A stretch of DNA of 63,657 bases, counting the filler, from Octopus bimaculoides (taxonomy: Eukaryota), in assembly GCF_001194135.2 (NCBI RefSeq). It is 7 parts of 7 records of this genome, joined end to end, with 100 filler letters (N's around TTAATTAATTAA, not from the genome) between each part and the next. Parts side by side here need not be neighbours in the genome. Positions count along the whole stretch, not along the records: positions 41,537 to 47,543 come from NW_026412513.1; 6 more parts are not named here. One strand, written 5' to 3'. How positions within the stretch are numbered: the first letter of the stretch is position 1; each line of letters opens with the position of its first letter. This document shows positions 41,537 through 47,543 of the stretch, piece by piece. Below the pieces are notes generated by a model. The model did not search any database, was not told the origin of the DNA, and saw only the letters and a program-made list of their open reading frames with translations. Position numbers and translations under genes: made by a program.

Positions 41537-44500
41537 ATACCATCAGCAACAACGTCAATACCATCGGCAACAACATCAATACCATCAGCAACAGCGTCAG
41601 TACCATCGGCAACAACATCAATACCATCGGCAACAACATCATTCCCAACAGCAACAACATCAATACCATCAGCAACAACATCAATACCATCAGCAACAAC
41701 GTCAATACCATCAGCAACAACATCAATACCATCGGCAACAACGTCAATACCATCAGCAACAACATCAATACCATCAGCAACAACGTCAATACCATCGGCA
41801 ACAACATCAATACCATCAGCAACAACGTCAGTACCATCGGCAGCAACATCAATACCATCGGCAACAACATCAATACCATCAGCAGCAACGTCAATACCAT
41901 CCGCCACACCGTCAATACCATCAGCAACAACATCAATACCATCAGCAACAACATCAATACCATCAGCAACAACATCAATACCATCAGCAACAACGTCAGT
42001 ACCATCGGCAACAACATCAATACCACCGGCAACAACATCATTCCCAACAGCAACAACATCAATACCATCAGCAACAACATCAATACCATCAGCAACAACG
42101 TCAATACCATCGGCAACAACATCAATACCATCGGCAACAACGTCAATATCATCGGCAACAACATCAATACCATCAGCAACAACGTCAATACCATCGGCAA
42201 CAACATCAATACCATCGGCAACAACATCATTCCCAACAGCAACAACATCAATACCATCAACAACAACGTCAATACCATCAGCAACTACATCAATACCATC
42301 AGCAACTACATCAATACCATCAGCAACTACATCAATACCATCAGCAACTACATCAATACCATCAGCAACTACATCAATACCATCTGCAACAACGTCAATG
42401 CCATCACCAACAACATCAATACCATCCGCAACAACATCAGTACCATCGGCAACAACATCAATACCATCAGCAACAACGTCAATACCATCCACCATGGCAT
42501 CAGTACCATCCGTCACAACTTCACTACCTTCTGCTGCATCAACATCACCATCAACAACAATTTTGTTAGCATCCACAATGACATCTATACCATCTACAAT
42601 TTCTGCAACATCATTAGCAACTACATCAATACTATTCGCAAGGACATCAGTTACATCTGTAAAGTCATCTTCACCATCAATACCATTTGCAACGACAGCA
42701 ATACCATCAGCAACAACATTAATACCATCTGCAACGACACCGATAACATCTACAATGACATCAATACCATCCACAACAACATCAATACCAACAGTATCTC
42801 TGTCCAAACCATCAGCTACAACATCAACACCGTCTGCACCAACACCCCTGTCGTTAGCAACAACAACAATACCATCAGCCACAGCATCAGTACCAACATC
42901 AATAGCAACCAGTACCTATGTGCAAGCAGTGACAACAGCGCCTCCACAGCCCATACCTACTGCCACAAGTCCCAAAGCAACAACAATGAAGCCATTTCAA
43001 GCCAGCACTACGTCAATACCTGCAAAAAAAACGTTAATTTTATCGACCACATCAATTGGGACATCTTCAACATCCTTAGTAAAAACAACACCACCAATCG
43101 CAACTGAAACAACAACATCTGTACCAAAACCACAATTAACATCGAAAAGCACAAGCACTCCAACAAGAACATCAATATCTACATCAACTACGCTGTTACC
43201 AATAACTACTTCAATGCCAGCAACTGCGACATTAATATCAGCAGCACCATCATTATTACCTATTACAACAACAGCCGCATTGTCGGGCAAAAAAACTTTA
43301 ATACCAACAACAACAACATCGACACCAACCACTACATCACTGCAATCATCAATAACTGCAACATCGACTGCAATATCAGCCACAAGTGCAATACCTACGG
43401 TAGCACAATCATATCAATCAACAGCATCATCACTACCTTCCACATCGTTCATCCCAACCACATCCATGCATGCTTTAACTTCAATACCAGCAAGGGATGT
43501 TACAATAACGACTGCAGTGCCATCGATACCTACAGCAACAAGAACACCAATAAGAACAACATCAACAACAACCTCACCAACATCCATACCGGCTTCAACT
43601 GCGAGAATGGAGCGTCCATCTTCAAAAGGAGGCACACCAGCAACTCGCATTGGCATCACGTCTTGTAAGGAAAAGCCAGGAGGAAAGAAACAATATACAC
43701 CAACTTCGATATCGGCAACAAGATCAATGCCAACACCTGCCACAACATCAATGCCAACAACAGTGAAAATCATATCAATACCAGCAACAACATCACAGCA
43801 AACAATGACATCAATCCCAATGATAATCCGATCAATACTAACAACAACATCAACACCAACAACAACATCACTAATACAAACAACAACACAATCAACATCA
43901 TCACTGCCAACAACAACATCAACACCCACAACAACATCAACACCCACAACATCAATACCCACAACATCTAAACCCACAACATCTATACCCACAACATCAA
44001 CACCCACAAAAACATCAACACCCACAACAACATCAATACCCACAACAACATCAATCCCCACAACAACATCAATCCCCACAATAACATCAATACCCAAAAC
44101 AACATCAACACCCACAACAACATCAACACCCACAACAACATCAATACCCACAACAACATCAATACCCACAACAACATCAATACACACAACAACATCAATA
44201 CCCACAACATCTATACCAACAACAACATCAATACCCACAGCAACAGCAACACCCACAACAACATCAACACCCACAACAACATCAATACCCACAACAACAT
44301 CAATACCCACAACAACATCAATACCCACAACAACATCAACACCCACAACAACATCAATACCNNNNNNNNNNNNNNNNNNNNNNNNNNNNNNNNNNNNNNN
44401 NNNNNNNNNNNNNNNNNNNNNNNNNNNNNNNNNNNNNNNNNNNNNNNNNNNNNNNNNNNNNNNNNNNNNNNNNNNNNNNNNNNNNNNNNNNNNNNNNNNN

Positions 44501-47500
44501 NNNNNNNNNNNNNNNNNNNNNNNNNNNNNNNNNNNNNNNNNNNNNNNNNNNNNNNNNNNNNNNNNNNNNNNNNNNNNNNNNNNNNNNNNNNNNNNNNNNN
44601 NNNNNNNNNNNNNNNNNNNNNNNNNNNNNNNNNNNNNNNNNNNNNNNNNNNNNNNNNNNNNNNNNNNNNNNNNNNNNNNNNNNNNNNNNNNNNNNNNNNN
44701 NNNNNNNNNNNNNNNNNNNNNNNNNNNNNNNNNNNNNNNNNNNNNNNNNNNNNNNNNNNNNNNNNNNNNNNNNNNNNNNNNNNNNNNNNNNNNNNNNNNN
44801 NNNNNNNNNNNCAACAACATCGATACCCACAACATCATCAATACCCACAACAACATCAATACACACAACAACATCAATACCCACAACATCTATACCAACA
44901 ACACCATCAATACCCACAACAACATCAATACCCACAACAACATCAACAACCACAACAACATCAATACCCACAACAACATCAATACCCACAACAAGAGCAA
45001 CACCCACAACAACATCAATACCCACAATAACATCAATACCCACAGCAACAGCAACACCCACAACAACATCAATACCCACAACAACATCAATACCCACAAC
45101 AACATCAACACCCACAACAACATCAATACCCACAACAACATATATACCCACAACAACATATATACCCACAACAACATCAACGCCCACAACAACATCAATA
45201 CCCACAACATCTATACCCACAACAACATCAACAACCACAACAACATCAATACCCACAACAACATCAATACCCACAACAACATCAATACCCACAACAACAT
45301 CTATACCAACAACAACATCAATATCCACAACAACATCAATACCCACAGNNNNNNNNNNNNNNNNNNNNNNNTATACCCACAACAACATCAACACCCACAA
45401 CAACATTAATACCCACAACAACATCAATACCCACAACATCAACACCCACAACAACATCAATACCAACAACAACATCAATACCAACAACAACATCTATACC
45501 AACAACAACATCAATATCCACAACAACATCAATACCCACAACAACATCAACAACCACAACAACATCAATACCCACAACAACATCAATACCCACAACAACA
45601 TCAATACCCACAACAACATCTATACCAACAACAACATCAATATCCACAACAACATCAATACCCACAGCAACATCAATACCTACAACAACATCAATACCCA
45701 CAACAACAAAAATACCCACAACAACATCAATACCCACAACAACATCAATACCCACAACAACATCAATACCCACAACAACATCAATACCCACAGCAACAAC
45801 AATACCCACAACAACATCAATACACACAACAACATCAACACCAACAACATCCATTCCCACAACAACATCCATTCCCACAACAACATCAATACCCACAACA
45901 ACATCAATACCCACAACAACATCAACACTCACAACATCAATACCAACAACAACACCCACAACAACATCAATCCCCACAACAACATCAATACCCACAACAA
46001 CATCTATACCCACAACAACATCAATACCCAAAACATCAATACCCACAACATCAACACCCACAACATCAGTACCCAAAACATCAACACCCACAACAACATC
46101 AATACCCACAACAACATCTATACCCACAACAACATCTATACCCACAACAACATCAATACCCACAACAACATCTATGCCCACAACAACATCAATACCCACA
46201 ACAACATCAATACCCACAACAACATCAACACCCACAACAACATCGNNNNNNNNNNNNNNNNNNNNNNNNNNNNNNNNNNNNNNNNNNNNNNNNNNNNNNN
46301 NNNNNNNNNNNNNNNNNNNNNACAACACCCACAACAACATCAATCCCCACAACAACATCAATACCCACAACAACATCTATACCCACAACAACATCAATAC
46401 CCAAAACATCAATACCCACAACATCAACACCCACAACATCAGTACCCAAAACATCAACACCCACAACAACATCAATACCCACAACAACATCTATACCCAC
46501 AACAACATCTATACCCACAACAACATCAATACCCACAACAACATCTATGCCCACAACAACATCTATACCCACAACAACATCAATACCCACAACAACATCA
46601 ATACCCACAACAACATCAACACCCACAACAACATCGATTCCCACAACAACATTAATACCCACAACAACATCAACACCCACAACATCAGTACCCAAAACAT
46701 CAACACCCACAACAACATCAATACCCACAACAACATCAATACCCACAACAACATCAATACCCACAACAACATCTATACCCACAACAACATCAGTACCCAC
46801 AACAACATCAACACCCACAACAACATCATTACCAACAACAACATCAATACCCACAACAACATCAATACCAACAACAACATCAATACCAACAACAACATCA
46901 ATACCCACAACATCTATAACCACAACAACATCAATACCAAAAACATCAATACCCACAACAGCATCAATACCCACAACAACATCTATACCCACAACATCAA
47001 TACCCACAACAACATCTATACCCACAACAACATCAATACCAACAACATCAATACCCACAACAACATCAACACCCACAACAACCTCAATACCCACGACAAC
47101 ATCAACACTCACAACAACATCTATACCCACAACAACATCAATACCCACAACAACATCAATACCCACAACATCAATACCCACAACAACATCAATACCAACA
47201 ACAACATCTATACCCATAACAACATCAATACCAACAACAACATCAATACCCACAACAACATCAATACCCACAACGACATCAATACCCACAACAACATCAA
47301 CACCCACAACAACCTCAATACTCACGACAACATCAACACCCACAACAACATCAATGCCCACAACAACAACACCCACAAAAACATCAACACCCACAACATC
47401 AATACCCACAACAACATCTATACCCACAGCAACATCAATACCAACAACATCAATACCCACAACAACATCAACACCCACAACAACCTCAATACCCACCACA

Positions 47501-47543
47501 ACATCAATACTCACAACAACATCTATACCCACAACAACATCTA
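41537..47543 (+). CDS. Mucin-type Thr/Ser/Pro/Ile-rich (PTS) region, partial (both ends in gaps)
   Basis: One + frame is open from 41537 to the gap at 44362 (~940 codons), including ~1.4 kb of non-tandem sequence, whereas the mirror - frame is interrupted by stops. 21-bp (TTSIPSA) then 18/15-bp (TTTSIP/TTSIP) units with indels only in multiples of 3. The same T-rich reading continues in contigs 44812-45347, 45372-46245 and 46322-47543. Confidence 0.7.

Follow-up and report, generated by a model that had tools for sequence, protein, structure and literature searches.

Positions 41537-47543 of the window analysed here (63,657 nucleotides (nt) of the Octopus bimaculoides assembly GCF_001194135.2, filler included, made up of seven joined parts) come from record NW_026412513.1 and carry long arrays of short tandem repeats, which raises the question whether this piece codes for a protein and, if so, on which strand and of which kind. 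Composition and tandem-repeat architecture both fit a mucin-type domain with a high content of proline, threonine and serine (PTS domain) read from the + strand (S+T 60 %, P 15 %), as had been proposed in an earlier note on the same DNA. As far as can be judged from the sequence, the piece is likely to come from the interior of a single large + strand exon, which would code for a PTS domain of at least ~1,700 residues.

The piece consists of four sequenced blocks, split by runs of 450, 23 and 76 N, and the PTS frame is open on the + strand in all of them; the first block alone holds both types of array as well as a non-repetitive core. Over the 1,817 codons that were sequenced the translation contains 40.9 % T, 19.1 % S, 14.6 % P, 11.7 % I and 5.6 % A (i.e. 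60.0 % S+T), with at least 43 % S+T and at least 11.7 % P in each sub-region; classically, more than 40 % S+T is expected of a mucin-type region. Charged residues stay below 2.5 % everywhere but in the core (9 %), and the whole piece has one Cys, no Trp, no N-glycosylation sequon and almost no aromatic residues. Published searches for mucins have used thresholds of at least 20-25 % S+T, at least 5 % P and at least 4 repeats (PMC2515642), and the values found here for S+T, Pro and the number of repeats (45 units in one type of array and ~190 in the other) lie far above these. PTS domains are normally contained in one large exon (PMC1552070).

Whether the piece is coding at all has to be decided outside the arrays, since open frames inside them prove nothing: the repeat unit contains no stop, and several frames are open within the arrays on both strands. 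This is also what would be expected of a non-coding minisatellite whose unit lengths of 21, 18 and 15 nt are multiples of three, and whose units are free of stops, by chance. The non-repetitive 1.3 kb between the arrays (42491-43831, 447 codons) is therefore the more telling part. Exactly one of its six frames is open, namely the PTS frame on the + strand, which has 0 stops, compared to 27 and 2 in the other two + frames and 62, 3 and 21 in those of the minus strand. Shuffles of this region that preserve the dinucleotides had a mean of 14.4 stops per frame, and a stop-free frame was obtained in none of 2000; shuffles that preserve the codon positions had a mean of 9.6 stops, with a minimum of 2. 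In addition, 296 of the 447 codons have a C at position 2, which amounts to a strong 3-periodicity. The absence of stops from these 447 codons is robust evidence of coding, and it is hard to reconcile with a minisatellite.

The arrays themselves add to this. In the 45 registered units of the 21-nt array the variants are distributed over codon positions 1, 2 and 3 as 18:0:43, so that position 2 is invariant across the array, which does not fit a minisatellite either. Of the variant codons in this array 36 are synonymous and 19 non-synonymous (a crude ratio of non-synonymous to synonymous change, pN/pS, of 0.25), while the same crude pN/pS is 0.55 in the 18-nt units, where the exchange of Ile and Thr (ATA/ACA) is the main replacement. 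The earlier note had stated that all length variants preserve the frame, and this proved correct in that 189 of the 189 spacings between 194 anchors are multiples of 3; not one non-triplet indel was found in them, despite a substitution divergence of 11-16 %, which is a further point against a minisatellite. However, the 15-nt and 18-nt units differ by a single ACA, lost or gained within (ACA)3, and slippage of this trinucleotide would account for the length variation in a minisatellite just as well. Given that it would do so with or without selection, the preservation of the frame is weaker evidence than it had been taken for, and its use as strong proof of selection was dropped.

With respect to the strand, it is again the stops that are informative. 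In the + frame 176 different single-base changes would create a stop, and it has 0 stops; in the antisense frame only 44 such routes exist (zero in the repeat consensus), and yet the core holds three antisense stops (43416, 42999 and 42918). Because the antisense frame has acquired three stops despite having four times fewer routes to them, the PTS frame on the + strand is concluded to be the one that is maintained, as a coding sequence under selection. The same contrast, in which a stop-prone frame carries no stops and a nearly stop-proof one carries three, speaks against a minisatellite, which is considered very unlikely on these grounds taken together. Third-position variability was dropped as evidence for the strand, as the third codon position is the same in both of these frames.

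A protein encoded on the minus strand, rich in Val, Asp, Gly and Ile (with DGIDVVA and GIDVVV units) and possibly spread over several exons, would be equally compatible with the excess of third-position variants, for the same reason, and its frame is open through all arrays. Its translation also gave nominal Pfam matches to T7SS_ESX_EspC and DUF7470, but these cover the profiles only in part (~20 of 100 positions for EspC, with no stretch that passes alone, and 37 of 58 for DUF7470), while a second antisense block had no Pfam match; both matches were rejected as artefacts of low complexity and repetition. Furthermore, no counterpart is known for its 27 % Val and 15 % Asp, in contrast to the ubiquitous PTS domains. 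Combined with the three stops in the core, in a frame that has so few ways of gaining them, this makes a minus-strand gene the least credible of the explanations that were weighed, and the + strand PTS frame is used in the remainder of the text.

Searches for related proteins were performed with the core, block 1 and block 4 as queries in a word-indexed collection of 5.8 billion proteins, which includes the NCBI animal proteins, and with the core in an exhaustive phmmer search against 1.84 billion representatives. Only low-complexity matches of short coverage were found (E no better than 5e-12), and no homologue. The collection of 5.8 billion also held no annotated protein that is near-identical to the piece or contains it. 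As a gene model with these blocks would share nearly all of its words with the query, the locus is not annotated in that collection, which bears out the earlier suggestion of an un-annotated mucin as far as proteins containing the array are concerned. The lack of both a homologue and an annotated protein in the searched collections is what a non-coding minisatellite would produce as well. Pfam found no family in the + frame of block 1 or of the core, and the flanks in which vWD, SEA or CK domains could be sought lie outside the piece. Exact DNA patterns (a unique 40-mer from the core and both repeat consensi) gave 0 matches in the metagenome and prokaryote-genome collections, and Rfam gave no match. 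A literature search on the peptide units returned one irrelevant match, and nothing specific was found on mucin repeats of cephalopods.

The weak protein matches include P0001 (CUB domains; marine metatranscriptome), P0008 (SEA and cadherin domains; crinoid, 'mucin-5AC-like') and P0011 (chitin-binding domain; the springtail Folsomia, 'mucin-5AC'), as well as unnamed metagenome proteins; some of the matched proteins bear the name 'mucin-5AC-like' at NCBI. For P0001, P0008 and P0011 the identity is 30-41 % along 12-20 % of the query (E-values of 1e-11 to 3e-4), and none of them has long TTTSIP or SATTSIP arrays; their composition is similar to that of the array studied here, and P0001 also has (T/S)SIP-type motifs. 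These matches appear to reflect similarity of composition and not demonstrable homology. A different kind of resemblance was seen in P0006 (a JGI metagenome protein of 514 residues), in which residues 13-140 form an array of SATQSIP heptads, identical to SATTSIP in six of the seven residues, followed by a leucine-rich-repeat-like domain. Because this domain is unrelated, P0006 was rejected as a homologue and its heptads were judged to be convergent. An unusually high Ile content had been claimed for the array, and this is true when it is compared with classical vertebrate mucin repeats; it is not unique, however, as the PTS regions of P0001 and P0006 contain 10.9 % and 11.2 % Ile, although these two proteins were retrieved for their likeness to the query and thus show that such Ile contents exist, not how frequent they are.

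Features of the piece at positions 41537-47543, in window coordinates
Feature	Positions	Strand	Description
Block 1	41537-44361	+	2,825 nt, gap-free; single open frame of 941 codons
21-nt tandem array (7 residues, IPSATTS / SATTSIP)	41537-42490	+	45 in-register copies (Tandem Repeats Finder); cut by left edge of piece
Decaying 21-nt repeats	42491-42904	+	still rich in T/S/P/A, PTS 63 %
Non-repetitive PTS core	42905-43831	+	309 codons; T 27, S 16, P 12, A 10, I 9 %
Short non-PTS island, basic, Gly-containing	43601-43702	+	34 residues, ARMERPSSKGGTPATRIGITSCKEKPGGKKQYTP (translation)
Start of 18/15-nt array (TTTSIP / TTSIP)	43832-44361	+	in frame with all upstream sequence
Assembly gap 1	44362-44811	.	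450 N; frame not kept at nominal length
Block 2, 18/15-nt array	44812-45348	+	PTS frame from 44814, 178 codons
Assembly gap 2	45349-45371	.	23 N; frame not kept at nominal length; flanks without unusual overlap
Block 3, 18/15-nt array	45372-46245	+	PTS frame from 45373, 291 codons
Assembly gap 3	46246-46321	.	76 N; frame not kept at nominal length
Block 4, 18/15-nt array	46322-47543	+	PTS frame from 46322, 407 codons; cut by right edge of piece

The arrays were located with Tandem Repeats Finder (TRF), and the result agrees with the positions and the layout that had been given before. TRF describes the 21-nt array (41537-42489) as 45.4 copies with 89 % matches and 0 % indels, of which 27 are exact SATTSIP units (the + frame reads IPSATTS), while its periods of 42 and 63 nt reach as far as 42902 at 80 % matches. 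The 18-nt arrays, at 43831-44361 and 44812-47541, comprise ~186 copies with 84 % matches and 4-5 % indels; the 18/15-nt units, ~190 in number, include 116 TTTSIP units of 18 nt and 27 TTSIP units of 15 nt. When rotated to a common start, the 21-nt and the 18-nt consensus share their first 14 nt, ACAACATCAATACC (TTSIP), after which the former continues with TCAGCA (Ser-Ala) and the latter with ACA (Thr); the 15-nt unit consists of nothing but this core.

The region in between retains traces of the same motif. In the non-repetitive core the dipeptide IP occurs 10 times, compared to 3.3 expected (p=2e-4), and [ST][ST]IP occurs 4 times, compared to 0.6 expected, and these (S/T)IP motifs would seem to be relics of the array motif. 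The core had no match in Pfam and no homologue in the searches. Within it lies the short island listed in the table, which holds the sole Cys of the whole piece and for which Pfam found no family match either. The shared TTSIP core of the units and the enrichment of relic motifs both suggest that two related arrays have grown out of one TTSIP seed and now flank an older and decayed PTS stretch. The repeats had previously been described as a gradient running from one unit type into the other; the arrays and their non-repetitive middle were indeed found as described, but the arrangement is better seen as two related arrays around a decayed stretch.

Some traces of the way in which the arrays change are visible within them. 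The 21-nt array (41537-42490) has a 42-nt dimer sub-period, which consists of synonymous CpG variants only (ACG in one unit, TCG in the next), and five identical units with an ACT variant stand in a row at 42272-42376. An FPTATTS variant occurs at 41642, 42041 and 42230 (spacings of 399 and 189 nt), and a V..I..F-P-T block recurs 399 nt apart; the recurrence of FPTATTS indicates segmental duplication within the array, and the dimer sub-period, the ACT run and the 399-nt block are all typical of unequal exchange. In the 18-nt array, 46985-47141 and 47387-47543 form a pair of 157 nt each, 402 nt apart and 96.8 % identical, the second copy of which extends to the piece's right edge. This pair hints at a higher-order repeat of ~400 nt.

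How long the exon is, and whether the four blocks form one contiguous exon, depends on the three gaps. In blocks 1 to 4 the first codon position lies at window coordinates that are 2, 0, 1 and 2 modulo 3, which means that the PTS frame is kept across none of the three gaps at their nominal lengths; as gap lengths are estimates, this mismatch is uninformative with respect to coding. If the missing sequence were in-register repeat, all three gaps would close in frame, e.g. gap 2 as ...ACA G[CAACAACATC]T ATA CCC. The sequence to the left of gap 3 (45949-46245) and that to its right (46322-46618) are identical at 294 of 297 positions (99.0 %, with the three mismatches at 46191/46564, 46229/46602 and 46245/46618), whereas the next-best pair of 297 nt anywhere in the 3.7-kb array is only 92.9 % identical. 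Since this near-identity abuts the gap on both sides, gap 3 is unlikely to be a true gap and more probably marks an overlap of contigs that were left unmerged, or a false duplication; a break at a near-perfect higher-order repeat would leave the same signature. Merging the two copies would let the frame continue without interruption and shorten the array by 373 nt. Gap 1 has similar flanks as well (44133-44361 and 44812-45040), with 94.8 % identity over 229 nt, the third best of 2.5 million window pairs; these may be copies from different alleles, or the assembly may have stopped at a higher-order repeat.

It is thus fairly probable that the apparent length and layout are to a large extent an artefact of assembly, with copies collapsed, duplicated or mis-joined, and that the blocks do not form one contiguous exon as drawn. 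The three gaps within the array, the inconsistent frame at each of them (at nominal length) and the similar flanks of gaps 1 and 3, the latter being the sole pair of its kind in 3.7 kb, all point in this direction, and the central exons of mucins are notorious for mis-assembly from short reads (PMC6269512, PMC1552070). Such an artefact would alter what can be said about length and continuity, not the nature of the element: block 1, which is gap-free over 2.8 kb and 941 codons, has both arrays and the core, so that the main conclusion holds irrespective of the gaps, and all blocks share one unit type and one strand. Of the ~2000 codons that had been suggested earlier, an open frame of at least 2.8 kb without interruption is upheld; the number itself rests on three gaps whose lengths are estimates, one of which looks like a false duplication, and the PTS codons actually sequenced amount to 1,817, or ~1,718 after removal of the ~99 that were probably counted twice at gap 3. 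Short-read assemblies collapse arrays of this kind (PMC6269512), and the true array could be longer than the sequenced one.

Several points weigh against the reading of the piece as part of one large exon coding for a mucin-type domain. No homologue was found, so that the coding status rests on statistics within the sequence; the variants of the units are inherited by duplication, and the counts per codon position are therefore not independent events; and the commonest two synonymous variants (ACG and TCG) are CpG sites. Third-position variability fits the antisense frame equally, which leaves the stops and biological plausibility to tell the two strands apart. The four blocks may not be continuous, and scaffolding could have joined contigs of paralogous or allelic arrays. 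The piece holds no start, stop, signal peptide or flanking domain, as its left edge lies inside the 21-nt array and its right edge inside the 18-nt array. Finally, PTS composition alone, in the absence of VWD or SEA domains, yields false positives for 'mucin', as pointed out by Lang et al. (PMC1552070).

The last point leads to the question of what kind of protein the PTS domain would belong to. Instead of a mucus-forming mucin, it could be the glycosylated stalk or spacer of another extracellular protein (e.g. one with CUB, cadherin/SEA or chitin-binding domains, an egg-coat or adhesive protein, or a surface glycoprotein of a protist or fungus). The weak compositional matches are PTS tails of precisely such proteins (CUB in P0001, SEA and cadherin in P0008, chitin-binding in P0011), the piece comes without flanks, and mucins form a functional and not an evolutionary group, in which new PTS arrays arise often and repeatedly in unrelated genes (PMC9417175). 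A length of at least 1,700 residues with 75 % P+T+S is, however, on the scale of true mucin domains and not of typical stalks, and a stalk or spacer is accordingly thought possible, if on the unlikely side; it differs from the preferred mucin-type reading in nothing but the flanking domains, which lie outside the piece. A gel-forming, membrane-tethered, chitin-binding or CUB-linked protein are all options for its class, which is set by those flanking exons. Gel-forming mucins are recognised by N-terminal vWD-C8-TIL assemblies together with vWC/CK domains at the C-terminus, and membrane-tethered ones by a SEA (or NIDO/AMOP/vWD) domain and a transmembrane helix on the C-terminal side of the PTS domain.

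Compared with known systems, the piece resembles the PTS exons of the vertebrate gel-forming mucins MUC2, MUC5AC, MUC5B and MUC6, which contain a variable number of tandem repeats (VNTR), in its very large size and its short Thr/Ser/Pro units, as well as in the scarcity of charged and aromatic residues, the presence of higher-order repeats and the gaps by which such exons are broken in short-read assemblies (PMC6269512, PMC9712336, PMC1552070). There is no sequence homology with these mucins, though, and the units are 5-7 residues long here, compared to 23 in MUC2 and 169 in MUC6. Ile accounts for ~12 % of the residues here and is regularly spaced as an Ile-Pro pair. Gel-forming mucins also have vWD, C8, TIL, CysD and CK domains, for which the piece has no flanks to show. 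The Drosophila Muc/Mur set and the peritrophin-type intestinal mucins are defined by S+T, Pro and at least four repeats, values that the piece exceeds widely (PMC2515642), and they are often orphans without a conserved domain, or with chitin-binding domains only. Unlike the present internal fragment, which is known from sequence alone, they are complete gene models with expression data, and the length of at least 1,700 residues would be at the upper end for that group. A third comparison is offered by the 'mucinised' proteins of Pajic et al. 2022 (PMC9417175), where exonic PTS repeats and changes in their copy number make a mucin-like domain, as seems to be the case here, with two arrays that look like expansions of one and the same TTSIP seed inside an older PTS region. 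Those are mammalian loci with known non-mucin ancestors, whereas no ancestor or orthologue is known for the present locus.

If established mucin biology applies, the arrays would gain and lose units through slippage during replication and through unequal exchange, in the manner of a VNTR, which would result in length polymorphism. The product would enter the secretory pathway, where its ~1,090 Ser/Thr residues would become densely O-glycosylated with N-acetylgalactosamine (GalNAc)-type glycans. GalNAc-transferases favour contexts such as that of the third Thr in TTTSIP, which has a proline at +3, and a PTS domain is expected to be disordered. Together with the glycans, a backbone of Pro and beta-branched Thr and Ile would be expected to yield an extended, protease-resistant and hydrated bottle-brush of several hundred nm, which may serve as a component of mucus, a coat or an adhesive. 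The regular Ile-Pro pair might, speculatively, add stiffness (through the beta-branched Ile) or weak hydrophobic contacts.

A more far-reaching proposal would be that of a lineage-specific, unannotated giant secreted glycoprotein, whose periodic Ile-Pro (one hydrophobic residue per 5-7 positions) would confer amphipathic or adhesive properties unlike those of classical mucins, for instance in an adhesive, an egg coat or a sucker secretion, and whose arrays would have recently expanded from one TTSIP seed; this is regarded as improbable. Every animal genome has dozens of genes with a mucin domain. Exons of PTS tandem repeats occur in all animals and originate again and again, and the piece is an ordinary kind of object in this respect and conceptually nothing new; regularly spaced Ile in PTS repeats is also seen in other database proteins. 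What the analysis adds is mainly of practical use: a large coding exon, apparently overlooked in gene prediction (probably through repeat masking and gaps), and a likely false duplication at a scaffold gap, which is hereby flagged. For studies of the mucus, adhesive or egg-coat proteins of the source animal, the locus would be a candidate.

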